Source: Octopus bimaculoides (lineage: Eukaryota). From it: DNA of 51,557 nucleotides. Position numbers and translations under genes: made by a program. The stretch spans positions 30,567,461-30,619,017 of the forward strand of contig NC_069005.1 of the NCBI RefSeq assembly GCF_001194135.2, written 5' to 3'. This document shows positions 14,862 through 50,625 of this stretch, in pieces. Within the stretch, counting starts at the first letter, position 1; every line of letters begins with the position of its first letter. The notes under the pieces were generated by a model that saw only the letters and a list, made by a program, of their open reading frames with translations, ran no database searches and was not told where the DNA came from.

Positions 14862-15033
14862 TGTGAAAATACTACAAATTTCTGTTTATTTTTTCCTGGT
14901 TAACAAAGTTGTTTGTTTTTTTTTAACATTAATTCACCATTTTTCACTGCACTCGTTTTGTTTTTTTTTTACTACAAAACTCATCATTTCGTGATATTTC
15001 TTTCTGAAACTGACACGTTAAAGTCTTAATTAG
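14862..15033 (+). other. KIF20: Putative non-coding first exon of the kinesin gene (5' boundary uncertain)
   Basis: Perfect AG|GTGAGT donor at 15033/15034 downstream of the promoter motifs. The ATG exon has an acceptor (tttttgtgcag, ending 19150) only 10 nt before the ATG, so an upstream exon is required. Confidence 0.55.
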
Positions 15034-15868: not shown

Positions 15869-15899
<31 letters not shown>

Positions 15900-18333: not shown

Positions 18334-18372
<39 letters not shown>

Positions 18373-19160: not shown

Positions 19161-19343
19161 ATGACGAGTAGAGAAACAATTTTATCATCGGAAGATGCTG
19201 AAGATGAGGAAAAGGTGGGAGATGGTCTGCGTAAAAACTTACTTGATGAATTTTACTGCGAAACAAATGAAAACTTTGAAAAGCTAAAGGTCTATTTGAG
19301 GGTTCGACCATTCACAGCAGAGGAGCAGCAGAACAAGTATCGG
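19161..19343 (+). CDS. KIF20: KIF20 exon 1 ([10 protein letters not shown]...[19 protein letters not shown])
   Basis: 183 nt; donor CGG|gtgagg; phase 0. Confidence 0.9.
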
Positions 19344-22300
19344 GTGAGGTTCTGTTTAATATTCTGTGAGATTGGTAAAGGCTGATGTGTGTGGGTTGTC
19401 TTTATAGTGAGAAAACCTTGTGTGTGTGTGTGTACATATACATACACATAGATGGTATGCCCTTTCTGATACCAACTGCTTTACATACGTGTGTGTGTCA
19501 TGATGTCTGGTCATGGGGAAAACATTGCCTTGTTTTGAAGTGAGGCTTATTGATAGGAAGGGCATCCGGTCATAGAGAATCAGCCTCAACAAAACTCCTT
19601 CTGACCCATGCAAGCATGGGAAAGTGGGCGTTAAACTGCTGGTGATGCCTTCTTTTCATTAAACTTTTTTTCTTACATCTTCTAGAGCTGTCTGACAATC
19701 TGTGGTAAGACTGTCACAGCCTGGGCACCAAAGGACTCCAACACTTACAAAAGTAGCACTTACATTACCAACAAGAATGTCCAGACATTCAAGTTCTCAA
19801 GAATTTTCGATGAACAGACATCACAGAGTGACTTTTACAGCGAAACCTGTCAGGGACTCGTGAAGAACTTCCTCAATGGACAGAACTGTCTCGTGTTTGC
19901 TTATGGAGTAACCAACTCGGGCAAGACATACACAGTACAAGGTATTCAATCTTTCATCTTTTTTTCATCTTAATTGTTGAAAACAATTGTTTTCTTATTT
20001 TTTTTTTTTTTTGTACAAATTTATTACCATTTCACTCGGTCCACTCAGCTGGCAAAAATGAGTAGTACCAGTAATTCAATGGGCCAACCTTGTCACGCTG
20101 AATCTCCCTGAGAACTACATTAAGGATTATTTACATAAGACGGATAAGTATCCTCACCTTGTTGTTACCACAGCATTTCAGCTGATGTACTCTACAGCCT
20201 TCATCAGGTGTCTTGGTAGAATTTCGAACCCAACACTTTATTTGACTAATGGGCTACTCTGTAGAACAGTATTACGTTAAGGATAAGCGTACATGTCTGC
20301 AGTACTCAACCACTTGCACCTTAATTCTATGAGCAGGCGGTTCTGTTGATCGGATCAACTGAAATCCTTGTCAGTAATGCCAGTAATGCCAGCTGTATGT
20401 TATATCATTTCGTCATTTATTCTTTCAGCGAAAATATCACATTCTTTGTTTGCTATTTCAGGTACACAGAAAGAACCGGGCATCTTACCTCGTACGCTTG
20501 AGACAATATTCAGCCACGTCTCTGGTAAACTGTGGCTCGGTCTCGACCTAAAACCAAAAATGTATTTAGATGTCATAAAATTATCGCCCAACTTTGAATC
20601 TGAAGAGAAACAAAGGAAAGAAGAACTTTTGCGGTTAGCTTCTTTTGAGGTGAGTTGTTTACTCGATTACTTTCTGAATTTTCCATCTTTCACCGTTTAA
20701 TTTAAAATATCTTGGAGTGGTCAAGCGGTCAGTAAGTGAAATATGTATTTAATCCCGTTCTCATCTAACTGCAGTTCTTTTGTACCATGCCAGGATATAA
20801 AGGCACTTTCAAGTGAAAGGTGTCAAATACCTTGACAAAACCATGATACGTTAATGCAGTAATATGCTTAAATCATTTATTTATATGAATATAACATATA
20901 TTTATATTTGTACATATGCTTTTTTATATTTCAGGAATCTGATATTCACAGCACTTTTGCCGACAGTGGTCGTGAGTCATGTACCTTAGACACCCAAGAA
21001 ACCAGCCACGGTGAGGATGCGGCAGCAGCCAAAGGTGGTGGTGGGGCATGCATTCACATTATGAAAAAGAAGTAGAGGGGTTGTCTGTTGTTGTAGAATT
21101 ATCAGACAGATTACTAAGCCAGGGAGCCAAAACCTCTTCACATCTTCTAATGAGGACATGGCCCTTCACTATTTAATGTTTTTGTCTTTTAATTGATGAC
21201 TGATTAATTACCATATACATTTGTAATTAACCCTTTAGCATTCAGATTGCTCTGTCAAATAGAATGCTCGTTTATTCACATTGTCTTGAAATAACCATGT
21301 ATTCTCTCATGGTTTTAAGATTTCAATTTTGCAATTATTTATTTTTAGAACGACATTGTAGAATAGGTGAGATAGGCCAGATCCAGTGTTTTAGCCAGAT
21401 AGGGCCTGGTTAAATTGCAGGACTTTATGAAAAAACTGCATGTGACTTATTTATTGAACCTTGCTGTGGGTTGGAAATTTGCAGCTTGCACTAATGCACA
21501 ATCATGTGCACATATGTTGACACTCATTCTGTTATTCCAGTCAAATGACTGAAACCAGTAACAGAATAACCGTTCCACATGCCAAACACTTTACAGTGTG
21601 AACTGGATGCTTTTTGCATGGCACCAGCACTGGCAAGGTCACCAAGTAACTTGCAAGACAAGGGAATTTGAGAGGGGGCAGGGGCATTTGAGGAGGAGAA
21701 CTTGTGTCAGAGGATGAAAGGTTAAAATATGACAGTCAGAAACAGGTGTCTTACTGTAGAGGATGTGCATGGTACCCAGTGAGATAGGTACAAGAAGTTT
21801 CTATGTCCTGAATTCATTTTCACAGATTTTAAGAACTTAGAAGTATAGCAGACAGTATTTGCCCAAGGTGCCATGCAGTAGGAAAGAATCTGGGGATTGT
21901 GTAGTTGTGAAATGAACTTAAAACAGTCGAGTGATCCTTAGGAGCTTCCATAGAATTTGCCAACATTTTCATAATTTATGAATTTAAAATAATGTCAATT
22001 GTTAAGACACACCTCAAACATGAAATTGTTCTTCTCCTCAGATTCTGATGTCAATGAAGAGGATTTGCTGCGTTCCACCCATCTGGATGACTCTGCGTTC
22101 TCGGGCCAAATAAAGTATTCCATATGGGTCAGTTTTGCTGAGGTATATAATGAAAATGTGTTTGATCTTCTGGTTACTCCTCTCCATAAGAAGCGGAATA
22201 TCTTGAAGTTGGGTCAGGACAAAAATGGTAACCATTATATTCGTGGTGAGTAATATTTCTTTTGACTTTTGATCTGGTGACAATTGAGTTGGATGGTTGC

Positions 22301-23234
22301 GCCTCTCAATGGTTTCGTTAACATCCTCATCACCATCGTCATCCAATGTCCACTTCTCCTTGCTTGTATGAATCGGATGGAATTTGTTGAGAGATATTCT
22401 TGGGCCAGATGCCTTTCCTGTCACTGGCCCACACCTATTTCTAAGTAAGGTTAAGTTTACCCATGGCCAGACATGTTTTCATGGCAGATTTGTATTTAAG
22501 GTCACTGGTAGTAACGACGTGTCACTCATTTACAACTATCATGCATAAGGAAAGGCATCTTGGTAGACAGAAACTGAAAGAAGCTGGTTCTATGTATCAT
22601 CATCATCATCGTTTAACGTCAGCTTTCCATGCTAGCATGGGTTAGACGATTTGACTGGGGACTGGTGAGACCAGATGGTTACACCAGACTCCAATCTGAT
22701 CTGGCAGAGTTTCTACAGCTGGATGCCCTTCCTAATGCCAACCACTCCGAGAGTGTAGTGCCACCGGCACTAAGACCAGTCAGGTGGTACTGGCAACGGC
22801 CAAGCTCAAAATGGTGTATTTTACGTATATATGTGTGTGTGTGTGTGTGTGTGTTAAGAGCTTAACGTTCATTCTCACTTGACATCTTTTCTTTTCTGTA
22901 TTAAATCCTAAACCCTGATTGTTATCTATCATCCACTGATTGCTTTCTGACACGTTTGTTTCCATTTCTTACACATGTGATAGGTTTGACAGAAGTGAAT
23001 GTTTCATCCATTGAAGAGGCCCAGAAAGTGTTGATTCTTGGCCAGAAAAATCTCCACAAGGCTGCCACAAAACTCAATCACAATTCCTCTCGAAGGTAAG
23101 GCTACATCGTTTGTTTATTCTTTTGTGGCCCATGGCTCTTGCTATCATCAAACCTCATCTGTTTCCAAGTGGAGTACTAATACTTCTCTCAGACAAGCAG
23201 GGACTTGCCAAGACAAGTGAAATACAAACTGACA

Positions 23235-23291
<57 letters not shown>

Positions 23292-26200
23292 CAGCAAAGT
23301 GAGATATGGATGCAATATTCCTTTATTCTTTTGCTGGCTTCAGTCATTTGACTGCGGCCATGCTGGAGCACCACTTTTAGTCAAGCAAATCGACCCCAGG
23401 ACTTATTCTTTGTAAGCCCAGTACTTATTCTGTCGGTCTCTTTTGCCGAACCGCTAAGTTACGGGGATGTAAACACGCCAGCATCAGTTGTCAAGCGATG
23501 TTGGGAGGACAGACACGCAAACACATATATATATATATGAAGGGCTTTTTTCACTTTCTGTCTACCAAATCCACTCACACGGCTTTGGTCAGCCTGAGGC
23601 TATAGTAAATGATGCTTACCCAAGGTGCCACACTGTGGGACTGAACTCAGAACCATTTGGTTGGTAAGCATGTTACTTACCACACAGGCTCTCATAGAGA
23701 GGGTCGAATATGGCTCCTAGTTTGAGAAGATTTTCTTCATAATTATAAGTTGTCACAATACCAGATTTTTTTGCCGCATTATATGTATGCCATATGTCGT
23801 AATATTATGTTGTTATGATATTAAACTTGCTTCTTCTTCTCATTCTCGTTGCAGCCATTGTATATTTAATATCAAACTCGTACAAGTTGTTAACAGAAAG
23901 AACCCAAGTGTGGCTAAAGTGAGCATGTAAGTACTCCTGGACGTTTGTTACAAATGTTCCCCTCTCTTTGTGTTGTTGTTTGTTCCTTCTCGAGTGATGC
24001 CTGGCTCAAAAGGGCTGGTTTCCTAATTTCATTGGTATATAGGTTCCTCAACGGGACGGGACGCCAGTCCATCACAGGTGAGCTGCTAGAGGCAGGAGAA
24101 AGTCGTGGCGAAAGACTCAGTAGAAGTTTGCCATTACCTTCTGCCGGATCCACGTGGAGCTTAAGTGTTTTGATCATATACACACATTGCCTGGTCTGAG
24201 ATTTGAACCTGCGATCCTGCACCGCAAGTCCGTTGCTCTAACTACTAGGCCATGTCCCTCTACTGTGTCTGTATGTACATTATTATTATTGTGAGCTGAG
24301 CGAGTTGTTAAAGCATTAGATAAGACCTTGTGTCATTTCTAGTTCTTTCCTGTTTGCATTATACTTTTGGGGTTGATGAAATAAAGGACCAGTTGAACAA
24401 AACTATTTGGCCACATTTAGTGATGTCTCTTTACATTCTGTTGTCAGCTTGTCTCTTCGTGTTTCCAGAGTCTGAGTCGGCATTCCCAAATCATTCGGAG
24501 CTCATTGTGTTACTTTTTTGATATTTCTTTTATAAGGTGGTGACCTGGCACAATTGTTAGCACATCAGCCAAAAATGCTTAGTGGCATTTTATCCATCTT
24601 TCAAATTCTTCCGATTACGACTTTGCCTTTCATCCTTTCAGGGTTGATAAATTAAGTACCAGTTTCGCACTTGGGTTGATGTAATTGATTTTAACCCTTC
24701 TCCTGAAATTGCCGGCCTTGTGCCAAAATTTGAAACCAATAGTTATTTGTGTTTTTTTTTTTTTCTCCAGGTTGTCTCTCTGTGATTTGGCAGGCAGTGA
24801 GCGTACGTGTAAGACCAATTCCACGGGAGATCGTCTGAAAGAAGCTGGCAACATCAACACTTCACTGCTGACACTTGGCCGGTGCATTGAGACGATGAGA
24901 AGTAACCAGTTAAGAAAGTGAGTTGACTGATGTGGTTTCATTGAGGCAGGTTTTATACGATTGGATGCCTTTCCTGTTCCCAACCCTCATTTGCTTCCAA
25001 ACAAGATAAGGTTTTTCACAAGAAATTGGGAACATGGGATGTCGCTCATATGATGAAGCTTGTTTATGCTATCCTGTGATGTCCAAAGGAGGAGGCACAA
25101 ACACACACATATATACAATGAGCTTATTTAACCCTTTAGGATCCAAACTAACCATATCAAGTCCAAATATTTTTCCTGTTCTATATTCAGACTGGACAGA
25201 TCAGGCCTTTCTCACTAACCCTACAATGGCATTCTAAAAACAAACAATTACATCGTTTAAATCTCAAAGCTATGAGACAATGTATGACAAATTCCAAACC
25301 ATGTGAATAAATAAGCATTACAGGTGATAGAGAAATCTGAGTGCTACCTATTGCCATTCCTGTTGAGGTTGCCGTTAGTAAGAGCATCCAGCTGTAGAAA
25401 CCAAGCCAAGAAGTGAAGCACACTTTGGCCATGATTATTGTACCTTGATGGTATTTAGTTTTGGCCCCAGTGCTGTCTGTGACCCCCATCGTCATTTAAT
25501 GTCCCATGCTGGCATGGGTTGGTTGGATCAACACTAAGCTCCAATGTCTGTTTCAGTGTGGTTTCTACAGCTGGATGGAGGCCCCCTCCTAACACCAATC
25601 AATTTACAGGGTAGACTTGTGCTGTTTCTTTGTTTGTTTTTTTTTTCATGGCACCAGCACTATGTAACTTGCAAGATTAAAGGCTTTGTGACCCCTATTA
25701 TTGATGAAGAGTAGAAAAAAGAGGAAATGCAATAATTCTGGTTGGAGTGATGAGGGGAAGGTATTTTTATATATGATTTCTTTTTCATATCTTTCTTTTT
25801 TTCTTGTCTTTTATTTCTAGGGAGTTTCCAAAGTTGATTCCTTACCGAGACAGCAAGTTAACCCGTCTTTTCCAGGGTTTCTTCAATGGTCATGGCGAGG
25901 CCATAATGATTGTCAACGTGAACAAATGCAGCAATTTGTTTGACGAAACTCTGCAGGTGTTCAAGTTCTCTGCTATTGCCAAGCAGATCGTCATTCAAAA
26001 GGACCCACTGAAGTCACCCTCTGTGAACATCTCACCTGTGCTCCCTGTCAAGCCACTCTCTAACCTTGAAAGGGTTTCAATACCCTGGGCTGAAGATGGT
26101 AAACAATTTTAATCACATCCACATGCCCACTTTTTCATTATAGCATGGAAGGCAGATAATAATGATGATATATATATAATTAACCCATTACTTATTTTGG

Positions 26201-29200
26201 ATGGGGTGAGGGGTTTACATCCATTGCCCCCTTTTTAGCCACCCTATTATTACTCCTCTATCACCAAAAAAGAAAACTATAATTCTCACTAAATATGACT
26301 GAGGCAGTTAGAGGACCTACAGTGCTAGAGATGAGAGCTAAAGCACTCTGATGCTGCACACACATATGGTGGGCTTCTCTCAGTTTCCGTCAACCAAATC
26401 TCCTCAGAAGGCTTTGATCAACCTGAATCTATAGTTACATACAAAAAAAAAACAAAAAAAAAAGCACTTGCCCAAAGTGCTACACAGTGGGACTGAGCCT
26501 GAAACCGTGTGGTTGGGAAGCAAACTTTTTAACCACACAACCAGCCAGCACCTTTGTCCATATTCATTCATTCAGTCTCACTGGAAAATTAGGTCCCATA
26601 ACATTTTCTCTGTAGCTTGCATCAAATTAATCTGAGTTACACTGTTTCTTTGAAAATTCCTCAGTTAACCATTTCACTATTAATCTGAGAAATTGGGCCT
26701 TAGTTTTGGACGTTAAATAAATGAAGGATTTTACAGAGATTTCTTCTCTTACCCAAAATTTTATTCATGTAGTGGGGTTGACCTGATGTTTTCTTGTTTT
26801 TTTTGTTTTTTTTTATATATATATTTTTCCTGTCATCCAAACTATGACTTCATTTCAAGGTATTTTGAGGGGTTTTTTTTTTCTTTCTCGCTCATTCTCA
26901 TTCTTACTTTATTCCCCTCATTCACTTTTTGTCTCCTCCTCTTTATTTTTCTCTCACTCTTACTCTCTCTCTTACTTTTACCCTTTTTCTCTCACTCTCC
27001 CTTTTTCTCTGTCTCCCTCATTCTCTTTTTTTTTTTTCTCTCTTCAGCCACTTTCAACGAACCACTTCCATCTGATGTTGAAGATGAAACCTTTGATGAA
27101 GAACTTACCGAAAGAGAAAGTGTAAATACTATTTTTGTCATTTTGCTTCTCACCATTTTTCATTTTATTTATCCTGGCTTAGTGGTTAGTGTTATACTCA
27201 TGGATCACCATTACTATTATTATTATTATTATTATTACGGCAGCAAGCTGACAGAAGTGTGAGCATGTCAGGTGAAATGCTTAGTAGTATTTTGTCTGCT
27301 GCTACGTTCTGAGTTCAAATTCTACCGAGGTTGACTTAGCCTTTCACCCTTTTAGGGTCAATGAAATAAGTACCTGTTATGCACTGGTGTCAATGTAATT
27401 GACTAAGCTCCCCTTCCCCCAAAATTTTCAAGGCCTTGTGCCTAGAGTACAAATATTATTATTATTATTATTATTATTGTTGTTGTTGTTGTTGTTGTTG
27501 TTTGTCTCAGGGATTATTGAACATCATAGAGACGTGCAAGACAAAGATTTCTTGGCTCCAGAAAATGTTGACTGAAGAGAAGAAGAACCGAATGTTGGAC
27601 GAAATCAAGATACGAGAAGAAGTGACCAAAGAGATGATGAAACAGTTTGTTATCATTGAGAAGAGTTACAAGTGAGTAGACCAGTTTTATTTGTTGGTTA
27701 AATACACAGCCTCCTTTGATCGTTTTTTTGGGGGTTTTTTTTTTTTTAACCCTTTTCATGTCAACCTGCCTAAGCCCATACTTGAAAGTGATCTTAATTA
27801 AAACCTATCAAAGTTTCATGCTAATTTATTTTAGGCGTGGCTGTGTGGTAAGAATCTTGCTTGCCAGCCATATGGTTCTGGTTTCAGTCCCACTACATGG
27901 CACCTTGGGCAACAGTCTTCTACAATAGCTTTGGACCAACCAATACCTTGAGTGAATTTGGTAGGCAGAAACTGAAAGAAGCCCATCATGTGTGTTTGTT
28001 TGGCCACCCCACCCCTGCTGTTGGTGTGTTTATATTCCTGCAACTTAGTGGTTTTGGCAAAAGAGTCCAATAGAATATGTGCTAGGCTTTAAAAAAAAAT
28101 AAGTCCTAGGGTCAATTATTTGACTAAAACCCTTCAAGGTGGGGCTCCAGAATCGCTGCAGTTAAAACTGCTATCTTGATAAATCTATTATTGTTTTCAA
28201 AATTAATTTGAAATGAAGTCAGTATATTTCAATAGAAACATGATAACAGAAAGGTTAACCCCTTTTGCTACCAACCTGTCTGGGGTTGCTCCTGGTTCCA
28301 TGACAGGATCCAAATTAAAAACTTTGGATTACATCGTTAATCTCATCGTCATCATTTAATGTCCACCATCCATGCTGGCATGGGTTGGACAGTTTGACAG
28401 GTGCTGGCCAGCTGGAGCGCTGTGCTAGCCTCTGTTTACTTTGGCATGGATTTTATGGCTTGATGCCAAAGTTAGAAATTGTTTTTAGTATGTTTGTCTC
28501 GGGGTTCACTGAAATTAATTTTAAAAAAAGGTTGTGTAATTCAGCAATAATATAATAACAGAAAGAGTCGAAGTGATTTAAATTAAAATCTCTAACTAAA
28601 ATTCCATGTTAATTTATACTCAGAGTACCAGCTTGAAGACAGTTAATTTACTAACTTTATTTTCGAGTATAATTCAAGTGTATTTCAACAGGAATATGAT
28701 ACCAAAAGGTTTAAATAAATGTAGGCATAATTAATGATATTCATCTCTGTTTTCATTTGGTGACAGTGAAAAACTCCGTGCCAGTCAGCTGGAAGCAGAA
28801 GAACGGTCCGATCAGTGTGTATTGAAGATGCTGAACACTGTAAGCTCCAAGAAGCGTTCTCATGATGAGATGGAGAGTGAAGAGAAATTTGTACCTTTGC
28901 ATGTGTTTGAAGAACTGCAGGAGAAGAAACAGGTAGATTGGATAATGGCTTCTTTGGATCTGAAATGTGTGTTGGTGGTTTTTGTATCTCTTTATCTGTT
29001 GGGGTTGTTTGTGTCTGTAGGTGTTTAGTAGTGCTTGTGTGTCAGATGGCATCGTTTGATTGTATTGCTGGATGCCCTTCCTAATGCCAACCACTACAAG
29101 ATTGTAGTGGGTGCTTTTTACGTGCCACCACCATCGGCCATGATTACAATCTCTCTTGGCTTGAGAGGTCTTCACAAGAACGGTGTATCGGCTGAGACCT

Positions 29201-32200
29201 TTGGCAAAACTTCCATGCTTGTGAAGACTTGTCAAGCCTAGTGAGCTCGTGGTCGATGCCAGTGTCGCATCAATGGCACCTATGCTGGTGGTACATAATA
29301 AGCACCCACTGCACTCTATAGTGGTTGGCATTAGGAAGGGCATCCAGGCGTAGAAAACCATGCCAAATCAGAATGGGACCTGATGCAGCTCCCCGGCTTA
29401 CCAGTTTTCGGTCACTGTCCAACCCATTCTAGTGTGGAAAGCAGATGTTAAATGATGATGATGCTGTTATTTGATGGTATGTGTGGTTGTCTCTTGATGT
29501 ATGTGTATACATGTAATGCACATCTGTAGTTGGTATTATATTCTCTCTTTTCTTTCTCTCAGGAATGTGAATTCAAAATCGAAAAACTAAACCAACAGCT
29601 GGAATCGACAAAAGCTCAGATGCGAAGGCTGACGTTGGATCGTTCTGCATTGCAATCAGAGAAGACTTCGTTACAACTGCAATTACAGGTTCCTGGTATC
29701 TACAAGCATTCGGTAAGTCTCTTGGCTATAAATTGATATGAAATGAAAATGTCTCATTATCATTAATGGAACGAAGGGAACTTGTTGATTTAGTGGATCA
29801 TCCTCACCAAAAGCTGTCTTGTTTGGCAGTCATTGAGAATTAGAAGAAACATGTGATGCTTTTCTAACTTCTTGTGTTCTGAGGTCAGCTTTGCCTTTCA
29901 TTTTTCTGGGATTCATAAAAAGCATATGAGTCTATGGCAGCCAACTTGTGGAATTGAAGCATCTCACGAGATATGTTGCAATATCTGATCCAGTTCTTTG
30001 CATTCTTAGTTCAAATCTTGCCAAAGTCTAATGCTTATTTCAGCCTTTCACTTCTGTAGGCCATTGATGAATTTCCTCTTGACTCTGGACTGTCTTTTCC
30101 TCATATTAAATTCCTGCTTTTTCAGCTCTACCTCAATATCCTACCACTGGCTATTCTATCTTCTATCTCCCTTTAGCAACTAGGCCAACTGTGTGACACG
30201 TGGACTTACATTCAGTTTAGTTTCTTTTTAATGTTTTAGTCATGGTGTGGTACAGGGCAGTAACCATATCTTCAGTTGAATCCCTGCAGAAGCTGGAGAT
30301 GTAGCAGAAGACACTTGCCCAAAGTGCTGCTCAGTGGGACTCAACCTGGGACCACTGGTTGCGAAACAAGCTTCTCAACCACACAGCCACACCTGCACCT
30401 ATTCTCTCTCTGTTTTTGATAATGTTCTTTAATAATAGACTTTAAAAAAAATATCAAGTATGTTACCTGTCATTTGAAATGTACCATTATCAGGTAGTCT
30501 GTATGATATTTATTGTTCTTTTTGGTCAGCTGGAGAATGCCACAAGTATGGGTGACAACATTGAACAGGCAAATGTATTGAACAAATTGACCAGTATGCT
30601 TAGAGACACCCAAGAAAAATTGGGGAATAAGGTATGTTTTAATCCTTTTGTTACCATATTCCTATTGAAGAAATATATCCACTTTATTTCAATTAATTTA
30701 AAAAATAATGAATATAGTAAAATAATTTCCATATTCCTATCAAAATATATCTACTTTATTTCAATTAATTTCCAAAATAATAAAGAATATAGAGGATATA
30801 TTCCTTGGAGCAAAGATTGTTTGCCAACATAACATGGCAGTTCTTGTTTAGGACGAATGTTGCTGTAATTTAGCCCAGCTAAATTTTATCAGGAAGAAAA
30901 TTTTATCACAGCCATGTCTGACTGAGCATTTTAGAAATATTGTGAAGGTAAGGTGTCAGGAAAGATTTAACTGCCTTTTCTAGCATGGTGAGAGGCTTAA
31001 TTATGCTTGTAGTCATCAAAGTTGCTTTAATATTCTAGGAATCTGCCGTAAATGAATTGGAAGAGCAACTCGAAGAAGCTGGTGAGACTTTCAAAGAACA
31101 ACAAGAGAAGATAGAACAACTGGAGAAGATGGTAGAAGAAATGAAGAAAGTAAGAAAGATATTAAAGATATTGTTGAATTCTTTGGTTTAGGCTTCGGTA
31201 AAGTTTCCTTCTTGAGTTGTGAGACTCATAAGAGTGCTTTCTTGGTTTCCATCATCATCATCTAACTTCCGTTTTCCATGCTGGCATGGTTTGGACGGTT
31301 TGACTGAGAACTATTAAGCTGGGGAGCTGCACCAGGTTCCATTCTGATTTGGCATGGTTTCTATGGTTGGGTGCCTTTGCCCTTCCTAATGCCAACCACT
31401 CCAGTAGTGTCGTGGGTGTTTTTTACATGCCACTGGCACTGGTGCCATTGACGTAACACTGGCATCAGCCACAACTATGATCTCACTTCGTTTGACAGGT
31501 TTTCTCAAGCACGGTTTTATAACCAAAGGTCTTGGTCACTTGTCACTGCCTCTGTGAGGTCCAACATTCAAATGGGACTGTTGCCATAGTAACGAAAGTA
31601 AAGCATGCAGAGTAAAGTTGCTTGGCAAAGATTGACCTTGAATTCTGCTGTGCATGGACACTAAGTTTTAATGTCCTAGCTCACTTCTGTTTACAGCAGT
31701 GCTTTGAAGGAACGTGTGTAGCGTGTGATTGTCGCATTGACCATGACGGAGAAAGTTGTCATCCAACATGTACTCATTGAGCTACTTTTTCATTTACCGA
31801 CTCCACTAACAAACCTTTAGTTGTCCGGGAGCTATAGCAGAAGGCATTTGACCTGGTTGCCATGCAATGGAATTGAACCAGAAATCATGGGGTTGGGAAG
31901 CAAACTTAACCACGCAGCCATTCCTGTAATATAAATAACAGTCCATGGTTTAAAAAAATTTTTTTTTTTTTCAAAATTTTCTCTCTTCAGACATCGACAG
32001 AATGCAAGGTGTGTCTGGAGAGATGTGAAGCCGGGTTGCCATTCAAGTCAAAGAAGATGGAGTCTGTTCCAGAAAATGCATCAGGTACAAACACTACTCT
32101 TCCTTTTCAAGGCACAACCAATGAAAAACGAGTTACTAGGAAAATGGTTTGTAATGGTATGGCAGCGAATGGACACAGAACTAATGATCTNNNNNNNNNN

Positions 32201-32575
32201 NNNNNNNNNNNNNNNNNNNNNNNNNNNNNNGCAGACGAGTCTCGTGTGCTACGGGTTTTGCTCAACAACAATTCCAATGGCCGTAACTTGGTTCCGACAC
32301 CGACAAAGACCAGCATGCTACGTATGAAGAAATTTTCTTTGAAACAGTCTGACATTGAAAATAGCCCACCTGGTCTTGTCGGTAAGCTTAATAAGGGAGG
32401 CAAGAAGAAAGAGAGCTTGCGGCATCGTTTGTTGGCTCCGATCTGCTCCAATCTGATTGCTGACAAGAAAAAGAAGAAAACTGAAATCAGGAATCGGCGC
32501 CGCTCTAGTTTAGTTTGCAATAAACGTACTTCTCTTGATATAAGCAGAAAATATAACTTACGAAGTAAAAGATGA
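19161..32575 (+). CDS. KIF20: Kinesin-6 family protein (KIF20A/B-like), short isoform, 16 exons, about 954 aa
   Basis: Motor motifs [16 protein letters not shown] (P-loop), [15 protein letters not shown] (switch I), LCDLAGSER (switch II), IPYRDSKLT. It also has a long loop-6 insertion and a [13 protein letters not shown] neck coil typical of kinesin-6. Phases are consistent; a 40-nt N-gap lies in the last exon. Confidence 0.92.
19686..19941 (+). CDS. KIF20: KIF20 exon 2 with P-loop (…[22 protein letters not shown])
   Basis: 256 nt; tctag acceptor; phase 0 to 1. Confidence 0.95.
20126..20272 (-). mobile_element. Degenerate hammerhead-family copy inserted into a family-D SINE, with a 10-bp TSD
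   Basis: GACACCTGATGAAGGCTG...GAAATGCT at 20212-20167; flanked by TACATTAAGG (20116-20125) and TACGTTAAGG (20273-20282). Confidence 0.65.
20462..20649 (+). CDS. KIF20: KIF20 exon 3 ([17 protein letters not shown]...RLASFE)
   Basis: 188 nt; phase 1 to 0; gtgagt donor. Confidence 0.93.
20935..21010 (+). CDS. KIF20: KIF20 exon 4, loop-6 insertion ([25 protein letters not shown]); donor ambiguous
   Basis: tttcag acceptor; phase-1 donors after 20971, 21010 and 21034 all fit the next exon. Confidence 0.7.
21227..21400. repeat. Possible piggyBac-like MITE fragment (related sequence near 36024-36190)
   Basis: TTAA-CCCTTTAGCATTCAGATT start is shared with about 36024. The TTAA-CCC terminus is suggestive only. 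Confidence 0.35.
22042..22245 (+). CDS. KIF20: KIF20 exon 5 (…[19 protein letters not shown]…GNHYIR)
   Basis: 204 nt; phase 1 to 1; gtgagt donor. Confidence 0.95.
22984..23095 (+). CDS. KIF20: KIF20 exon 6 (GLTEVNV...[11 protein letters not shown]), switch I
   Basis: 112 nt; phase 1 to 2; gtaagg donor. Confidence 0.95.
23241..23288. repeat. (CA)n microsatellite
   Basis: Direct reading. Confidence 0.95.
23855..23926 (+). CDS. KIF20: KIF20 exon 7 ([24 protein letters not shown])
   Basis: 72 nt; phase 2 to 2; gtaagt donor. Confidence 0.93.
24771..24917 (+). CDS. KIF20: KIF20 exon 8 ([12 protein letters not shown]...[16 protein letters not shown]...), switch II
   Basis: 147 nt; phase 2 to 2; gtgagt donor. 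Confidence 0.96.
25821..26098 (+). CDS. KIF20: KIF20 exon 9 (…[13 protein letters not shown]…[15 protein letters not shown]…PWAED)
   Basis: 278 nt; phase 2 to 1. Confidence 0.95.
27048..27121 (+). CDS. KIF20: KIF20 exon 10 ([25 protein letters not shown])
   Basis: 74 nt after a long CT-rich tract; phase 1 to 0. Confidence 0.85.
27511..27671 (+). CDS. KIF20: KIF20 exon 11 (GLLNIIE...[21 protein letters not shown])
   Basis: 161 nt; phase 0 to 2; gtgagt donor. Confidence 0.9.
28767..28932 (+). CDS. KIF20: KIF20 exon 12 ([14 protein letters not shown]...FEELQEKKQ)
   Basis: 166 nt; phase 2 to 0. Confidence 0.85.
29563..29712 (+). CDS. KIF20: KIF20 exon 13 ([14 protein letters not shown]...GIYKHS)
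   Basis: 150 nt; phase 0 to 0; gtaagt donor. Confidence 0.88.
30530..30631 (+). CDS. KIF20: KIF20 exon 14 (LENATSMG...TQEKLGNK)
   Basis: 102 nt; phase 0 to 0; gtatgt donor. Confidence 0.85.
31039..31149 (+). CDS. KIF20: KIF20 exon 15 ([13 protein letters not shown]...MVEEMKK)
   Basis: 111 nt; phase 0 to 0; gtaaga donor. Confidence 0.87.
31991..32575 (+). CDS. KIF20: KIF20 exon 16: terminal exon of the short isoform (TSTECKVC...[10 protein letters not shown]), with an internal donor after 32084
   Basis: ctctcttcag acceptor; ORF 32009..32575 in frame; basic C-terminal tail; AATAAA at 32684-32689 and 33511-33516; N-gap 32191-32230. Confidence 0.82.
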   Translation, partial: TSTECKVCLERCEAGLPFKSKKMESVPENASGTNTTLPFQGTTNEKRVTRKMVCNGMAANGHRTNDXXXXXXXXXXXXXXADESRVLRVLLNNNSNGRNLVPTPTKTSMLRMKKFSLKQSDIENSPPGLVGKLNKGGKKKESLRHRLLAPICSNLIADKKKKKTEIRNRRRSSLVCNKRTSLDISRKYNLRSKR

Positions 32576-32683
32576 TTTCACTTTAGATTAATTTAAACAG
32601 GAAGATTGTACCGAAAGAATTAGGGGCTGTCTTGGGTAAGTTGGTACCAGAAAGGTGAATAATGTGTATACTATTTATGGTAA

Positions 32684-32689
32684 AATAAA
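32684..32689 (+). terminator. Candidate polyadenylation signal of the short KIF20 isoform (a second lies at 33511-33516)
   Basis: AATAAA about 110 nt after the TGA, in repeat-free U-rich 3'UTR-like sequence. Confidence 0.45.
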
Positions 32690-34388
32690 ACATTTTTTTT
32701 AGAAATGTAACGTTATGTAGCAGTATGAAATATTGTAATGACTGGGCAATTTGTTCATTGTGAACCTTATGACTCCAGTAAACTAGAAAAGGTTTCAATA
32801 TCTGACAGCAGATGTCGTTGACAAAGGTCGGATTTCATTACAATATTATAACATTTGCAAGTCTTCCTCTTTTCTTGGTTAAAACCAAGGTCAACTAGTT
32901 TAAGAAGTGGCACCTGTTAGAATTATCATAAGATATAGCAGTTAGATCTGTCTGTGGCTCCCAAATGTCTCATTTTTCTTTGTTCATATCATCTCTAAAC
33001 GTGATACAGACAAACCTTTGTGGAGAACCAACATTATACCATCTGAATCAAAGTTGCAAATTTTGTAGTTGGTAACTTTATACAAGACAATCTCAAATTT
33101 AGAGGAAGCGACGCAAAGACAAACAACTTCTTCAAAGCATCGATGGCCATATTATTTCAGAAGCAGGGCAAGGTTCATTTTATCATCATTATTATTTTTT
33201 TATTTTTTTGAGATTTCTTTTTAATTTGCTGGAGTATGTCATGGATATGAATAGAGTTGATTGTGAATCTGTAGTAATCACCTGAATTACGATGAATGTC
33301 TGCAATCAATCTGTTGGGGATCAGATGTGAGAATTTGAATTAACCACTGTGTGAGTATGTTCGTGTATGTGCGTGAGATTTGAATCAGAGACTAAATTAT
33401 AGCTGAATTATCTCTTTTCACATATCATTGTCCATGATGTTTGGTGTTGTTGTTGTTGATGATTGTCGTGAATGTTGCAGAATTTTTTTTGAAAGAATCG
33501 TAAATTATGGAATAAATTTGTAAATGTCTCGACTAATTTTTGTTGACTTGTTTTTTTTTTTGTTTTTTATTTTTTGATTGGTTTTGTTGTATTGATTGAA
33601 GGGAATTCATTTCCCCCCTTTGAAAACCAGAGAAATCTTCACCTGAAGTCAATACTAACCTAAACTTTTGTTTTGGTTTCAGGTGAAGACCATTCCTGGC
33701 TGTTTGACCACACGGTCACCATATGGTTTCTATTTTTATTTTATTTTTCCCCACTCCAAGTCACGAGCATGTCTTGGCTTGCATCCTGGCCCAGGGTGGT
33801 GTTCGACAAAGGTGTAATCTGATATGATACGATGCTAGGTTGCACCATGACCAGAGATTTTCTCTCTTCCTCCCTGTCTCTCTTTTTCTCTCCATTTGCA
33901 TAATACTGAGAGCCATTCTACAAACTGGAGTTTGCCTCTTAAACTGGCAATTTAATCAATACTGGAGCCAGTTACTGTTGTCATCATTGTCATTGCTGTT
34001 TAGACCCATAAACGTATAATCAAAGGTATTTTAATTATGACCAATGTGTCATTTCTATTTTTAAAATGCCCAGGTGTGATTTCAGGGAAATGCAACCACT
34101 AGCAGATCAAGCTCCCTCCACTCTGTAGCCTCTTGCTTGTATGGCTTAAAAGTTGTATCGAAAATGTGATTGATCTGTTTTGAGCAAGATCTTACTACTA
34201 TTTCTAACAGATCGAGTTCCCTCCCTTCCATAGTTGCTCTCCCTTTCTGACTTATTTTATTGAAAATATGGTGACTAAGGGGTGTTACTTCTGTTGGGAA
34301 CAAGGCAGAAGCTAGTGAGAGAAGATTTATCTCCCCTTACAGAAGCTAGTCTACGTAAAACATCTACATGGAAATTACGTATGTAGAT

Positions 34389-34582
34389 CAGTGCTCAGCA
34401 GGCGGTATGCCGCGGCACGCTGGAGTGCCACGAGACGATGCTAGGTGTGCCGCAGTGTAACCTGAATGTAATTTTTTCCCTATACTTTTAGTTATATTCA
34501 TTTCAAAATTCGGTGGCATACCTAAACTAAAGATATAAGTCCTACAAGTGGTGGAGGGGGAGAAAAGATTTGCCGAGCACTA
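34389..34582. mobile_element. hAT-superfamily MITE (194 bp)
   Basis: Termini CAGTGCTCAGCA ... TGCCGAGCACTA; perfect 8-bp TSD ATGTAGAT at 34381-34388 and 34583-34590. Confidence 0.85.
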
Positions 34583-36199
34583 ATGTAGATGGATGTGTGA
34601 TAGTTTCCCCACTGCTTGATAACCAGTGTGGGCTTGTAACTTAGGGGTTACTGAGAGGAAAGACTACTTTGGGAACTAATTATGTATGTTACAGCTAGAT
34701 TTTTATCTACCTGGTTGTCTGATAAGTAATTTGCTTCCCAACGACACTCTTCTGGATTCAGTCCCACTATGTGGCACATTGGGCAAGTGTCTTGTGAGTG
34801 GATTTGGTAGGCAGAAACTGAAAGAAGCCTTTTGTGTGTGTTTGTGTTTGACACCACCACCACCACCACTGCTTGACAATTGCAGTTGGTGTATTTATAT
34901 CTCTGTAATTTGGTGGTTCGGCAAAAGAGACTGTTAGAATAAGTCCTAGGCTGACAATAAGTCTTGGGTCTATGTGTTTGACTAAAAGCGGTGATCCAGC
35001 ATGGCCACNNNNNNNNNNNNNNNNNNNNNNNNAAAAAAAAAAAAAAAAAAGAACAGTACAATACTGTTTCTACTTTGTGGGTTTTTATCTATCATGGGGC
35101 ATTTTGGAAAGTAACACTCACGATGGTCGAGGGCTTACTGTGTTATTTTATCTCTTGATCGTTTCAATCATTAGACTGGGGCACCACCTTGAATTTTTAG
35201 TCAAATGAATCAATCCTAGTACTTTTTAAGCTTAGTACTTATTTTATTGATCTCTCATGCCTAACTGCTAAGTTATGGGAGACGTAAACACACCAACACC
35301 AGTTGTCATGTGGTGTTGGGGGACAAAGACATTCACACACATATACGACAGGCTTTATTTGGTTTCTGCCCACCAAATTCACTCACAGGGCTTTGGTTGG
35401 CCTGAGGCTGTAGTGATAGACATTTCCAGTGGAAATGAACCGGGAACCGTGTGGTTAGGAAGCAAGCTTCTTACCACAGCCCCAACTGCATCTGTGTATG
35501 GTTATATTATTAAAAAAGATCATTTATAACAAAACTAGACTATTAATTCCAAATGGGTTTGGAAGGTAAAGTGTTAATCCATCATATCTGGGTCACAAAG
35601 TTTGCAGTTTGTGATCCATTTCTGGTTCTATGATGCAAATTCCAAATTATGTTTCAAACACAAGATAAATAATCTCAAAATTATTTTACTAAATTCTTCA
35701 CTATTTTCAAAATTAATAGAAACAAGGGTATCATGTTTCAACTGAGAGCATTATCATCATTTAACATCCGTTATCCATGCTGGCATGGGTTGAACGCTTG
35801 TGATGAAAGCTGGTAAGCCGGGTAGGGGAGGGCTGCACCAGACTCCAGTCTGATTTGGCATGGTTTCCACAGCTGGATACCTTTCCTAATGCCAACCATT
35901 TTACAGAGCGTGCTGGATGCTTTTATGTGGCATTCCCATGGGTGCTTTACACAACCAGAGGGATCGGTCTTAGCACTTGTGCTGCAGGGTACAGGTCTTC
36001 TTGACTACAGCCAAACAAATGGGTTAACTTTAGCATTCAGATTACACTGTCAAATGTAATGCTTATTTTTTCACATAAATTTGAATTAATCATACATTAT
36101 GTTGTGTCTCCGGGATTTCAGTGATGTGATGGTTTATCTCGAGAATGACATTGTAGGTGTGATTGGCTGGATCTTTTTGGTTTGAACATAAAACAAAAT

Positions 36200-36433
36200 A
36201 CATTATTTACATTTGACAGATATTTGTCCTCATCTTGTTTGTTGCTAACACAACATTTCGGCTGATATACCCTCCAGCCTTCATCAGGTGTCTTGGGGAA
36301 AGTTTCGAACTTGGGTTCTCATTCCTAAGGTATTTTTCGATGTTGTTATTATTATTCAGGTCACTGCCTGGAATTGAACTCGGAATCTTGGAGTTAGTAG
36401 CCCACGCTCTTAACCACTACACCATATGCCCAT
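36200..36433 (-). mobile_element. SINE-like element with a tRNA-like head and an internal minimal hammerhead ribozyme motif (most complete copy)
   Basis: Minus strand: GGGCATATGGTGTAGTGGTTAAGA (A box, 36424-36414) ... GAGTTCAATTCC (B box, 36381-36370), an (AAT)n linker, then GACAC-CTGATGA-A-GGCTG..CAGCC-GAAA-TGTT-GTGTT (36292-36247). Confidence 0.75.
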
Positions 36434-37659
36434 AAACATAGTGGTTAAGAACACAGCTACTGACCCCAAGATTCCGAGTTCGATTCCAGGAGTGACCTGA
36501 ATAATAATAGTGTTGGTGTGTTTACATTCCCTGTAACTTAGCAGTTCTGCAAAAGAGACCAATAGAATTAAGTCCCAGGCTAAAAAGAAATGATAGTAAT
36601 GGAAGTTGATTCATTCAACAAAGAGTTCTTCAAGGCAGTGCTCCAGCATGGCTGCAATCTAGTGACTGAAGCAAATAAAAAGATGGAGCAGGTAAAAAAA
36701 ATATGTTTGTGGCATGTAAACAGCGTCATCCAAACGTGGCCGATGCCAGTGCCACCTTGACTGGTTCCCGTGCTGGTGGCACATAAAAAGCACCATCCGA
36801 ACCTGGTCGATGCCAGCCCCCTCTGGCCCCTGTGCCAGTGGCACATAAAAAAGCACTCTCTACACCCTTGGAGTGGTTGGCGTTAGGAAGGGCATCCAGC
36901 TGTAGAAATACTGCCAGATGAGACTGGAGGCTGGTGCAGTACGGAAAATGGATGTTAAGCGATGATGATGATGTGCACTTGTGCCACCGACATATAAAAT
37001 GCCCTTGTGCTGATGGCACATAAAAAGCACCCATGCTGGTGGCACGTAAGATGTACCCAGCACACTCTAAGGTGTTTGGCAGTAGGAAGGGCATCCAGCC
37101 CTAGAAATCATGCCACAACAGACAATTAGAGCCTGGACAGCTCTCTGATTTTCCATCTCCTTTCAAACTGTCCAACCCAAGCCAGCATGCAAAATAAAAA
37201 CAGTTGGAGATATAATTCATAAACTCCTCTGAAATATTTAGGCAGAGGCATGACTGGTAAGAAGTTTGCTTCCCAACTGCATGGTTCTGGGTTCAGTCCC
37301 CCTGCATTACACCTTAGACAAGTCTCTTCTACTATAGCCTCAGGCCAACCAAAGTCTTGTGAGTGGATTTGGTAGACAGAAACTGAAAGAAACCCCTCCT
37401 TGGTGTGTGTTTGTCCTCCTCCACCACCACTTCACAACTGGTGTTGGTGCATTTACACCCCTATAACTTAGCGGTTTGGCAAATGAGATTGATGGAATAA
37501 GTCCCAGGGGTCAATTTATTCAGCTAAAACTTCTTCAAGGCATTGCCCCAGCATGGCCACAGTCTAATGACTGAAACAAGTAAAAGACAAAAATGGATAA
37601 AATTTGCCTTTATTACTTTCTTCATTCCTTTATTAATTTTGTCTTCTATTTCTTTCCAG

Positions 37660-40058
37660 AAGGCACCCAACCTGTGGAGAGCGTTGCAGAATTTGAGCTG
37701 CGAGAACGTGCTTTAATTCATGGTTACAATGCCGAGATAGCAAAGTACAAGCTATTGGTTCGAAGACTTCGTCAAGAACTTGGCTTTCGCAACACCAGTC
37801 ACCTCTCGCCAAATAAAAGCTTACGTCCCGACCTCAACAGTTGTCTGGAACAAAACGAACTGAAGCAGTATTTACTGCGACAGGTAAAGAAACTTCAAGA
37901 AGAACTGGACAAGAACTCTCAGTGCGTGTCTGAGTTGCTTCATGAACTCGAAGTTAAGAAGGCTGCTGAGACGGATTTGGAACAGAGGTTAGAGAAAGAA
38001 GCGATGGGACACCAACAAGCAAAAGCTGCTGTGTCTGAGATGAGAGAGAAGCTGAAGAAATTGAATGAAAGATGTCGTTCGTCGTCTTTCGAAGCTGAAA
38101 AGACTTATTTAAAGATCAACAGTGAGATGTTTGACAGCGGAAATCATGTTCTGTCTTGCAAAGAGGACAAAGATGAGGAGTTTGCTTTAGGTGTTAAGAA
38201 ATCTGATGAAAACCAGTCTGACCATAGTGATGGGAACAAGAAAGAAAGCAACAAGGAAGCGAGGAATAAAATGGTGAAGACGAAGAGAGAGAGTCCGCTT
38301 TTGAGCATTGAAAATCAAAATGACGTGAAACTGTCCGTGTTTGATAATCATAACTTGAAGGATAAGATAATTAATAAGAATAAGGAAATCTTGAAATTAC
38401 AAGAGACACTGCTTTCATATTCAGAACTGGACTCCAAATATCAAAAGAAAACGAAAGAAAATGAGGAATTTTTATGCAAAGTTCAAAAGCATGAAACTCT
38501 TGAACGTGATCTTAAAAAGAAAGTGAAACATTTAGAAGAAAAAGTCGAAAAGATTGTGGTGTTTGAAGTTGAAATAGAGAGCCAAGTTGCAATCATTAAG
38601 CACCTTCAAACAGCGGTGGATGAGAAGTCTAAATTGTTGTCTGATCTTCAGAGTCAGAATGGTGGAGAAAGTCCCATGTTGAAACGGAAGATGGAAGAGA
38701 TGCAAACTGTGATGGAAGGTTTGCGTGAAATGGTTGATGACAGCACAAAAGAACTGGCCAAAAATAACGAGAAACTCAGTGATCTGGAAAACAAGGAAAA
38801 GATGGTGTCTTCTCTTCAGACAGAATTGGAAACATTGAAGTCTGAGGCTAAGATTAAGTCTGATTCTCTTCAGAGTAAACTCGATGAGTTGCAAACTGAG
38901 AAAGACAAGGTTTTCAAAGGAAAAGATTGTTTAGAGAATGAAGTGATTCAGCTGAAAGAGCTTGTTGAGAAGAAAACACAAGAAATGTCTAGTTTGAGAA
39001 CAGAGCTGAAAGCCAAAGACATTGAGAGCGAGAAAGAAAATGTGTTGGTTATCAATAATTTGAAGAATACATTACACAATGCAGTAAGTGAACGAGAAAG
39101 TGTGGTACAGGAATTGGCAGAAGCTAAAGGGAAACTGTTGGGCAAAGATGAAGAAATCTGCCAAATGTCGAAAAAGATTGAGGAATATGAAAAAAAATTA
39201 GAAGACTCAAAGACTGAATTGGAAGCTGTTCAGGAAAAGAAGAGTATTGAAAGTGATGCTTTGAATGATATAATTAATGAGATGAACAACAAAATAGCTA
39301 GCATGAACCTACTGAAGGAAAAACTTCAGAAAGAAATAATGAATGTTGCAGAACATTTGAAATCTTTGAAAACAGAACTGGCTACAGTTCGCCAAATGAA
39401 GTTAGACATGGATGATAATGTAAAGAGTTATATGGCACATCTGAAGTCTAACCTGAGTGAAATTACTGGTCTTACAGCAGCTGCTGCTCACTGTGATAAA
39501 TCAATGTTAACCGATTTAGAGATGCTGCCTGAAAAGAAGGAAATTGAATCTCTGAATTTGAAGATAGTTGACTTGGAGAAAGATCTGGAAGACAATGTTC
39601 ATATGAGAGAAAATTTCATGACTGAAATTTCCTGCCTTGTAGCATCATTGAAGAATAAAGACCAACAAATAGAAAATTTAACCAAGGAAAAAATCCAGGC
39701 GTCTGAGAAAGAATCTTCAGAGAAGAAAGTAAATCTTGTTGAAAGTGATGTTGGATCTGAACACACGAGGAATCGATTGTCCGGTGAGAAATCCGATGGT
39801 CTGAGTTCATCATCGATTGAGAAACAACAGCACCACCAGGTGTCACCAACAAAGCAGGACAACCAATCACCACCACTGAAGAAACCAGCCCGTCAGTCAG
39901 CGCCAACGAAGCCAAGAAGACAGTCATTATGTAAGAAACAAGATGGAGACACACAGACTTCTCCTGAGAAGCAGAACAGAGTTAAACAGGCAACTCCTGA
40001 GATGCAAGTCGGATACACACAGACGTCTCCTGAGAAGCAGGATAGACTTTCAAATACG
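37660..40058 (+). CDS. KIF20: Large coiled-coil exon L1 (about 800 aa), probably the long KIF20 isoform
   Basis: ORF 37593..40079. Polypyrimidine tract plus cag acceptor ending 37659 in phase 1; donor ACG|gtatgg in phase 0; E/K/L-rich heptad sequence. The link to KIF20 is inferred. Confidence 0.85.
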
Positions 40059-44836: not shown

Positions 44837-45004
44837 NNNNNNNNNNNNNNNNNNNNNNNNNNNNNNNNNNNNNNNNNNNNNNNNNNNNNNNNNNNNNNNN
44901 NNNNNNNNNNNNNNNNNNNNNNNNNNNNNNNNNNNNNNNNNNNNNNNNNNNNNNNNNNNNNNNNNNNNNNNNNNNNNNNNNNNNNNNNNNNCCCTCGTTG
45001 GTTT

Positions 45005-49800: not shown

Positions 49801-50433
49801 ATGCCTAGAAATTACATCGATGGTCACCAACGGTTATAACGATCGTTTGTGCAATAAGTAATCAAAATATTGTTTTGATGTGAATATGAGATGAAAGCAA
49901 TCTCAAGTTAGAAACTTTGTCAATAAAATAAGCAGACGACACAGCTTTGTTACAAACATGCAGGGAACAGCATCTGGTTAAGTTTAAGCATTCATTATAG
50001 ATTTTAGATGGCTTTATCAAGAGTAAGTGCTATAAAAACGACTCTGTTGCAGGGTTGTACAATCTGGTGGTGGTGGTGGTGGTTTTGGTATTGATGGTGG
50101 TGGTGGTGGTGGTGGTGGTGATAATGGCAGGGTATGTAAAAGCAGATTAACTGCAGAGTTAATCCCAAGGTACTGCTGGTACCTATTTACAGCTGGGTTT
50201 GCACATCATAAACGAATTTCATTCCCGCTCAAATGCTGCCCCTTTCACAAACACATCATCTTCTTATCTTCCCTCTTACATTCATATCCTCTTGTCCGCA
50301 AACTCTCATTCAAGCATCCACAATGTCTTTCTCCACTCTTTTATACAATGTCTGCCCTATCTGTGCATGGAAAGTGGACGTTAAACGACGATGATGATGA
50401 TTATTTTATTTATTTTTTTTTTTTTTGTAGCAG

Positions 50434-50625
50434 GTGATTGTTTCCAGTGAACCAAGTAAAACTCCACAAGTTGAGGGACTCCCTAAATCTGCCGAATCAC
50501 CACCAATGTCACCAGGAGTACCAACAGGCCGAGAGAACTACAGAGAAATTGATGTGACCCCACCAGTAGCTATCAGAGCTTTGAGAAGGAATCGCAAGCG
50601 AAAGCCACTGGAGACCTCCCCTCAG
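50434..50625 (+). CDS. KIF20: Exon L10 (VIVSSEPSKTP...EIDVTPP...RRNRKRKPLETSPQ); the gene continues beyond the window
   Basis: Poly-T tract plus tagcag NAGNAG acceptor (start 50431 or 50434); CAG|gtaaat donor in phase 0; no stop reached. Confidence 0.78.

Follow-up and report, generated by a model that had tools for sequence, protein, structure and literature searches.

A kinesin-6 gene of Octopus bimaculoides whose composite exon 16 probably serves a short and a giant long product

The kinesin-6 gene, exon 16, and the short ending

The window, by which we mean the whole stretch of DNA analysed here (51,557 nucleotides, nt), is part of the chromosome record CM046625.1 of Octopus bimaculoides, with 39% G+C and nine N gaps. 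It contains, on its + strand, a kinesin-6 gene in which exon 16 is likely to be a composite terminal exon that serves both a short protein and a giant long one. An earlier note, which proposed that a KIF20A-like and a KIF20B-like protein come from this one locus, was followed up computationally; positions are those of the window unless the locus of another species is named.

The exon model was built independently from open frames, AG/GT borders, and phase bookkeeping, starting at the ATG at 19161. The kinesin gene has 16 exons with borders and phases consistent throughout, and the part common to both products amounts to 791 amino acids (aa). Exons 1-15 (19161..31149) encode the motor domain, the neck, and the first coiled coil, and lie at 19161-19343, 19686-19941, 20462-20649, 20935-21010, and 22042-22245 (exons 1-5), 22984-23095, 23855-23926, 24771-24917, 25821-26098, and 27048-27121 (exons 6-10), and 27511-27671, 28767-28932, 29563-29712, 30530-30631, and 31039-31149 (exons 11-15). 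The translation of these exons is identical to residues 1-760 of the RefSeq protein XP_052832821.1, and every one of them except 27048-27121 was matched by tblastn with the Argonauta and other orthologues. The motor domain is N-terminal (Pfam Kinesin PF00225, E 9e-94, aa 47-469; Microtub_bd PF16796, E 7e-17) and carries the kinesin-6 loop 6 insertion (423 residues over the complete 327-position Pfam profile), the extra segment of which is encoded by 20935-21010 and the adjoining exons. Among the best 120 database matches, all named proteins are called KIF20A or KIF20B and none KIF23, the others being unnamed. The gene is a KIF20-branch kinesin-6, nearest to KIF20A/KIF20B and not to KIF23/MKLP1.

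Exon 16 begins at a phase-0 acceptor (tcttcag/ACA). Its first part, exon 16a (31991..32084, + strand), is common to both products, encodes a segment ending in VPENAS plus one base, and stops at an internal 5' splice site, CAG/GTACAA (32082..32090, cut at 32084/32085), which is in phase 1 within a Gly codon (G/GT) and is weak, having no G at +5. The read-through extension (32085..32575), which would form the tail of the short product, contains an assembly gap (32191-32230) and is open to the TGA at 32573-32575, as the earlier note had described. AATAAA candidate poly(A) signals, recognised by sequence match, follow at 32684..32689 and 33511-33516, 109 nt and 936 nt past the stop; Argonauta has an AATAAA 204 nt past its own short stop, and the signal at 33511 is not conserved there. 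Another AATAAA lies within the coding tail, at 32519-32524 and 50 nt 5' of the stop (TGC AAT AAA CGT, read as CNKR); the CNKR peptide is also present in Argonauta, and CSKR in a second cephalopod.

Open stretches of 114 codons are common enough in shuffled sequence (about three per window in six frames), and since openness alone is weak evidence, the case for the short tail rests on homology. The tail, which is basic and ends in KYNLRSKR, matches aa 751-1011 of a 1013-aa Argonauta protein (tblastn, E 3e-26) and aa 884-999 of the 1000-aa, mRNA-derived protein of the second cephalopod (tblastn, E 2e-23), with ESRVLRV, TPTKTS(L/M), and KYNLRSK as common motifs, and it also aligns with bivalve proteins of ~1000 aa named KIF20A. 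The second cephalopod (63% identical to Octopus) is probably a decapodiform. Its short protein is represented by 12 independent contigs of ~3.5 kb from different RNA-seq samples, which hold the full 1000-codon open reading frame (ORF), intronless and with 5' and 3' untranslated regions; in this species, and so in one cephalopod at least, the short form is abundant as mRNA. On this comparative evidence the short ending is real coding sequence.

The 40 N of the gap at 32191-32230 preserve the frame, which is uninformative, the gap length being an estimate. The homologous exon is a single uninterrupted genomic ORF of 264 codons in Argonauta hians, is uninterrupted in Haliotis asinina too, and is continuous in the mRNA contigs of the second cephalopod; because the orthologous exons are uninterrupted, the two flanks of the gap can be assigned to one exon. 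The spacing from the Gly-Thr to ESRVL is 78-80 aa in Argonauta, Haliotis, and the second cephalopod versus 33 aa plus the gap in Octopus, and the gap therefore probably hides ~45 aa and not 13. The length of about 954 aa given in the earlier note agrees with the 954-955 aa of the product as drawn; the protein itself is probably nearer 985 aa, the short-form orthologues having 1013, 1000, 1009, and 956 aa.

The long ending

If the internal donor is used, exon 16a would be joined to L1 (37660..40058, + strand), the first long-specific exon, which has 2.4 kb and 799 codons, follows a phase-1 acceptor (ttccag/AAGG), and corresponds to residues 793-1591 of XP_052832821.1. The phase fit that had been claimed for these two sites is confirmed, as the donor at 32084/32085 leaves one base, the acceptor at 37660 needs one, and the junction codon is GAA. 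The same junction, 32084 to 37660, is already used in RefSeq XP_052832821.1 ("KIF20B, partial," 2192 aa), which is identical to our independent model. The acceptor belongs to a NAGNAG (37657-37665, CAG AAG), and a start at 37663 would be in frame with one Glu fewer.

Within the gene model only the internal exon-16 donor fits L1, the donor of exon 15 being in phase 0. The internal donor is conserved in nucleotides where the protein is poorly conserved (CAG/GTACAC in Argonauta, CAG/GTACGG in the mRNA of the second cephalopod), with counterparts in Haliotis (AAG/GTAGCA) and Sinanodonta (AAG/GTACAC), and it is because this donor alone within the gene is both compatible and conserved that we join L1 to exon 16. 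The phase-1 acceptor of L1 is strong and is kept in four cephalopod genomes, and no conserved start codon was found ahead of the best-conserved 115 aa of L1 across the cephalopods compared; translation must therefore enter L1 from an upstream phase-1 donor. The junction codon is acidic in all cephalopods compared (GAA, GAT, GAC, or GAG). Against an 88%-identical octopod contig, L1 diverges by 6.4/5.4/17.8% at codon positions 1/2/3 and its flanks by 18-19%, with indels of 21 and 3 nt within the exon; judging from these counts, L1 is under purifying selection as coding sequence.

Downstream on the same strand, L2 (41073..41526; 64% identical to the Argonauta locus), L3 (42004..42863; 72% identical), and L4 (43118..43253) continue the phase chain and are included in XP_052832821.1. 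L5 (43831..43956) carries the conserved KIF20B stalk motif (…IVETLKMSLKDQDDTIVELEDIM…INALEE), recognised by profile, and L6 (44610..44836), placed by the phase chain, runs into the gap at 44837-44991. This gap interrupts the RefSeq model, XP_052832821.1 ending at 44836. Beyond it, L7 (45379..45623) has a phase-1 acceptor, and its continuity with L6 is putative; L8 (47775..48053), phase 0 on both sides, has good splice sites and no homology support; and the last visible long-form exon (50431..50625; …REIDVTPPVAIRALRRNRKRKPLETSPQ) ends at the donor CAG/gtaaat and has a Haliotis KIF20B match. The nine L exons chain in phase; with the common part included, the protein amounts to 2192 aa where the gap begins at 44837, and another 240 aa follow past the gap, the frame being open at 50625. 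Ten downstream exons giving more than 2400 aa had been counted in the earlier note; the phases and the length stand, and nine exons could be placed. A second public model of 488 aa begins at an internal ATG (45420) inside L7 and extends past the window end. A mariner-type transposase remnant (…HQDNARPHT…) was noticed on the minus strand at 50815-51120, in the intron that follows the exon at 50431..50625.

When L1 was used as the query in an exhaustive HMMER search, four proteins were obtained, including XP_052832821.1 and the KIF20B of Haliotis rubra (2625 aa, E 2.8e-14), in which the L1 match lies ~960 aa downstream of the kinesin motor. In a pairwise comparison of the Octopus long model with KIF20B of Haliotis asinina, collinear matches were obtained for the motor (E 1e-166), the N-terminus of L1 (E 3e-22; 45% identical to aa 969-1090), and the last visible exon (E 1e-3; aa 2414-2469, …EMDATPPIAAKAIKKSGRKR…). 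With a stalk-motif profile made from long kinesin-6 proteins of abalone, annelid, sea-star, and sea-slug origin, the ORF of L5 was the top match (E 1.4e-3) when all 1735 six-frame ORFs in the window were compared. Against the first 120 kinesin-6 matches, neither pairwise BLAST nor a small hidden Markov model of the L1 N-terminus gave anything significant, a motif match in Elysia alone standing out; it was the HMMER search that decided the matter. A profile of the KIF20B C-terminal tail had no match in the last visible exon or in the short tail.

The locus in other molluscs and in amphioxus

The same order is found on an 18-Mb contig of Argonauta hians, in which the kinesin stop is followed after 4.3 kb by L1, L2, and L3. 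In Haliotis asinina, the exon that supplies aa 868-913 to the long RefSeq protein has CAAG/GTAGCA at its end, in phase 1 and in a Gly codon, and read through it stays open for ~150 codons, ending …NRVLRVMVTPIQKLMARHTKTSLLRLK…KQKYNLRTRLKF and a stop (…HTKTSLLRLK…KYNLRTRLKF); this read-through tail matches bivalve and cephalopod short tails with E values of 2e-12 to 1e-5. The next long-form exon of 3.2 kb carries the L1 motif ALIHGYNAEI. At 23965-24477 of the same Haliotis locus, four tandem copies with a 128-nt period encode the same 29 aa (KIF20B aa 825-853), of which the RefSeq protein appears to use one. The freshwater mussel Sinanodonta has AAG/GTACAC at the homologous Gly of its terminal exon, and no L1-like exon was found there within 10 kb downstream; the Mytilus contig used ends inside the gene. 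The composite exon of Haliotis asinina places the arrangement before the cephalopod-gastropod split. Of the other molluscs in which the earlier note suggested looking for the same arrangement, Argonauta has the order, Haliotis the composite exon, and Sinanodonta the donor-like site.

The amphioxus Branchiostoma belcheri (locus 10001-28018) has a 976-aa kinesin-6 with a KYNLRS tail and, 1.1 kb downstream on the same strand, two coiled-coil genes, one of which holds a 42-aa KIF20B stalk motif (26440-26565, E 2e-7 versus abalone). The GT at the homologous Gly codon makes a poor donor (AAG/GTTCAC), and the first ORF downstream carries an ATG of its own. This arrangement of neighbours is suggestive. 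A two-ended KIF20 gene, with a KYNLR-tail short form and a VVRRQLR-tail long form, might be the ancestral bilaterian state, from which vertebrates would have split the outputs into KIF20A and KIF20B after duplication, that is, by subfunctionalisation of isoforms. We regard this as possible though somewhat doubtful; of the pre-duplication state envisaged in the earlier note, the part that holds is an age greater than the cephalopod-gastropod split, the remainder not being established and amphioxus being suggestive only. A concrete, testable model is provided for how vertebrate paralogues acting at different steps of cytokinesis could arise from the isoforms of one gene.

Vertebrate KIF20B has about 1800 aa, and the Octopus long form (>2430 aa) is longer. 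The latter is of the type annotated as KIF20B (also MPP1 or MPHOSPH1) in invertebrates, for which our comparators were the Haliotis proteins XP_067658521.1 and XP_046579604.1 and the "KIF20B" of Physella, echinoderms, arthropods, and cnidarians. The Octopus gene shares with this type the N-terminal kinesin-6 motor with a long loop insertion and a stalk of >1000 aa, with collinear matches to Haliotis in L1, L5, and the last visible exon; the join between motor and stalk in Octopus rests on the RefSeq model and the conserved splice phases. KIF20B has been termed vertebrate-specific (PMC5909929, citing Janisch 2013), which is contradicted by the many invertebrate long forms among the best 120 database matches, and a long-stalk kinesin-6 is not a vertebrate invention.

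The short product is similar in size and architecture to molluscan "KIF20A" of ~1000 aa (Mytilus, Ruditapes, Patella), and the bivalve "KIF20A" tails are homologous to the Octopus short tail, with SRVL.V.L.P, TKTSLLRL, and KYNLR in common. A profile of the molluscan short tail matched molluscan and cephalopod sequences only and none of 60-odd vertebrate KIF20A proteins at E<0.1, a weak negative given the small set, and the amphioxus tail was undetected by it too. The short product is KIF20A-like in size and architecture only, and to this extent the likeness proposed in the earlier note has to be narrowed; its proposal of one locus with a composite exon and two products is supported by the comparative evidence, the RefSeq junction, and the conserved tail, donor, and order. 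In molluscs, the names "KIF20A" and "KIF20B" appear to denote two outputs of one locus. This would explain why bivalve entries for apparently one orthologous locus bear the name KIF20A and those of Octopus, abalone, and Physella the name KIF20B, and also why annotations split the locus in two, as in Argonauta, in amphioxus, and at the gap in RefSeq. NCBI names are also inconsistent among close relatives, KIF20A and KIF20B both being used in congeneric corals, scorpions, shrimps, and sea urchins among the best 120 matches; one coral entry of 825 aa, "KIF20A isoform X1," seems to combine the long-form motor with part of the tail region, the stalk being absent.

The choice between two endings and rival readings

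We consider it likely that a single kinesin-6 gene, from 19.2 to >50.6 kb, gives both the short and the giant long product by way of composite exon 16. When the internal donor at 32084/32085 is left unused, the exon would run to the stop at 32575 and the transcript would be polyadenylated probably soon after it (AATAAA at 32684), which would give a product of ~955-985 aa with motor, neck, short coiled coil, and basic tail. When it is used, a 5.6-kb intron would be removed and exon 16a joined to L1 and then to at least eight more exons, so that the same motor would be carried on a very long stalk in a product of >2430 aa, of the type annotated as KIF20B. Splicing and cleavage/polyadenylation would compete, cleavage past 32684 committing the transcript to the short mRNA and use of the donor removing the signal in favour of the long one. 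That Octopus makes both products, and that such competition is how the choice is made, we infer from the anatomy of the locus. For each product, an annotated or assembled molecule is on record from at least one mollusc, the long form as annotation (Octopus, Haliotis) and the short form as mRNA contigs (the other cephalopod). Nothing on kinesin-6 isoforms or evolution in molluscs was found in the literature searched; what is new is the recognition of two conserved endings at the locus, across molluscs, the long model in RefSeq and the type of mechanism being already known.

The switch between secreted and membrane forms of the immunoglobulin mu heavy chain is of this type, a composite terminal exon with intronic polyadenylation. 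In both, an exon contains a weak 5' splice site, beyond which the frame continues to a stop that precedes a poly(A) signal; use of the site skips the signal and adds exons, so that a common N-terminus is provided with different C-termini. The systems differ in that the part added in Octopus is >1600 aa of coiled coil and not a short membrane anchor, and in that the competition of splicing with cleavage is deduced for Octopus from anatomy.

Several observations weigh against our reading. Direct proof that the short ORF is continuous is barred in this assembly by the gap at 32191-32230. The GenBank annotations of Argonauta and amphioxus make the downstream coiled-coil part a separate gene. Among the matches listed in word-index searches, where coiled-coil words saturate the 8000 candidates, L1 found two genomic ORFs and L2-L10 none, and there was no transcript-derived cephalopod protein with L exons, so that for the expression of the long form we have the annotation; the RefSeq long model could in principle be a chained prediction. 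A search of the 3.3 kb past the window (1586 nt of which are N) did not reveal the terminal long-form exon, and the canonical KIF20B tail (a basic cluster, …SAPF.C.P…, and …VVRRQLR(S/T)K) was located neither there nor in the last visible exon or the short tail, the gene leaving the window into a 1.6-kb gap.

Some of these points would suit two genes, a short kinesin-6 complete at 32575 and, downstream of it, a separate coiled-coil gene whose unrecognised first exon and promoter would lie in 32.6-37.6 kb, the RefSeq fusion being a prediction artefact; the separate annotations in Argonauta and amphioxus and the lack of a transcript-derived protein spanning the junction among the matches listed speak for it. 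Yet the Argonauta gene, of 1648 aa, is annotated from 28429, in the middle of the L1 homologue (25948-29529), and ~600 codons of open, conserved exon (25948-27750) are left unannotated before it. L1 itself starts at a conserved phase-1 acceptor with no conserved ATG before its best-conserved segment, the L exons match, in the same order, the stalk and tail of KIF20B in Haliotis, where the protein bears the motor, and the internal donor is conserved together with its phase. In the interval from the short stop to L1, the sole unique element common to Octopus and Argonauta is a 77-nt block without an ATG. We find two genes improbable. The remaining conservation in 32.6-37.6 kb is that of a microsatellite and of a dispersed short repeat (copies at 35750-35900, 36860-37130, 14134-14472, 16804-17226, and 34648-35061), which is also present in many copies in the Argonauta locus.

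It is also unlikely that only one ending is used in Octopus, either the long one with the tail as a conserved-looking relic or the short one with the L exons as a decaying remnant. RefSeq has the long form in Octopus and assembled mRNA the short form in the other cephalopod, and neither species shows both, which speaks for a single ending. The tail ORF, though, is open and keeps its motifs in Octopus, Argonauta, the second cephalopod lineage, Haliotis, and bivalves; in L1, divergence at the first two codon positions is threefold lower than at position 3, with indels in multiples of three; and L1 is retained in Argonauta and in a decapodiform-like genome. From the preserved tail ORF and the coding pattern of L1, it follows that both endings are under selection in the cephalopod lineage. 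An assembly artefact, in which a mis-join at one of the gaps (32191-32230, 35009-35032, or 44837-44991) brought the middle part of a KIF20B gene to the 3' side of a KIF20A gene, hardly deserves credence: the region concerned does include three gaps, one of which interrupts the gene model, but the order is identical and the spacing similar on the 18-Mb contig of Argonauta hians, by which a scaffold mis-join is ruled out as the source of the arrangement, a single locus of Haliotis carries both the short tail and the giant exon, and the interval 32.6-37.6 kb is free of motor-domain exons. The gap at 35009-35032 is inside the long-form intron and non-coding.

The 77-nt block common to the two octopods lies within the long-form intron (33633..33709, + strand) and is a conserved non-coding element, unique within the window. 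It is 92% identical over 78 nt to positions 24381-24458 of the Argonauta locus, with sharp edges, as compared with 76% for the start of L1. Its motifs, TACTAAC, a pyrimidine tract, and TTTCAG/GTGAAG, are conserved in this order (TACTAAC…TTTTGTTTTGGTTTCAG/GTGAAG) and juxtapose 3' and 5' splice-site-like motifs. The block folds into a hairpin of 12-17 base pairs in which the splice-site-like motif is paired with an upstream complement (z -4.7 and -3.6). No counterpart of the block was found in the loci of abalone and bivalves, and Rfam on 32-38 kb gave only sub-threshold matches at chance level, the block itself having none. A coding or first exon was rejected as its identity, since the block lacks both an ATG and a conserved donor downstream, and so was a role in a conserved distal poly(A) site, since the signal at 33511 is not conserved.

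Recursive splice sites, in which 3' and 5' splice sites are juxtaposed, are present in long introns of Drosophila and vertebrates. The block shares with them a branch-point-like TACTAAC, a pyrimidine tract, and CAG/GTGAAG in one highly conserved intronic element, and differs in that the Octopus intron is only 5.6 kb and the motif is buried in a stable hairpin. The block resembles a recursive splice site or a masked U1-binding site, and could equally be a structural regulator of isoform choice, or be unrelated to it. If it takes part in the choice of ending, this octopod-conserved hairpin may set the ratio of short to long product.

The gene model of O. bimaculoides needs to be completed across two gaps, and the short isoform is to be added or sought in Octopus and Haliotis. 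The region at ~5500-13350, upstream of the kinesin gene, holds on the minus strand a gene for a 26S proteasome AAA-ATPase subunit (OB_PRS7 / AAA / AAA_lid_3), which is interrupted by two gaps.

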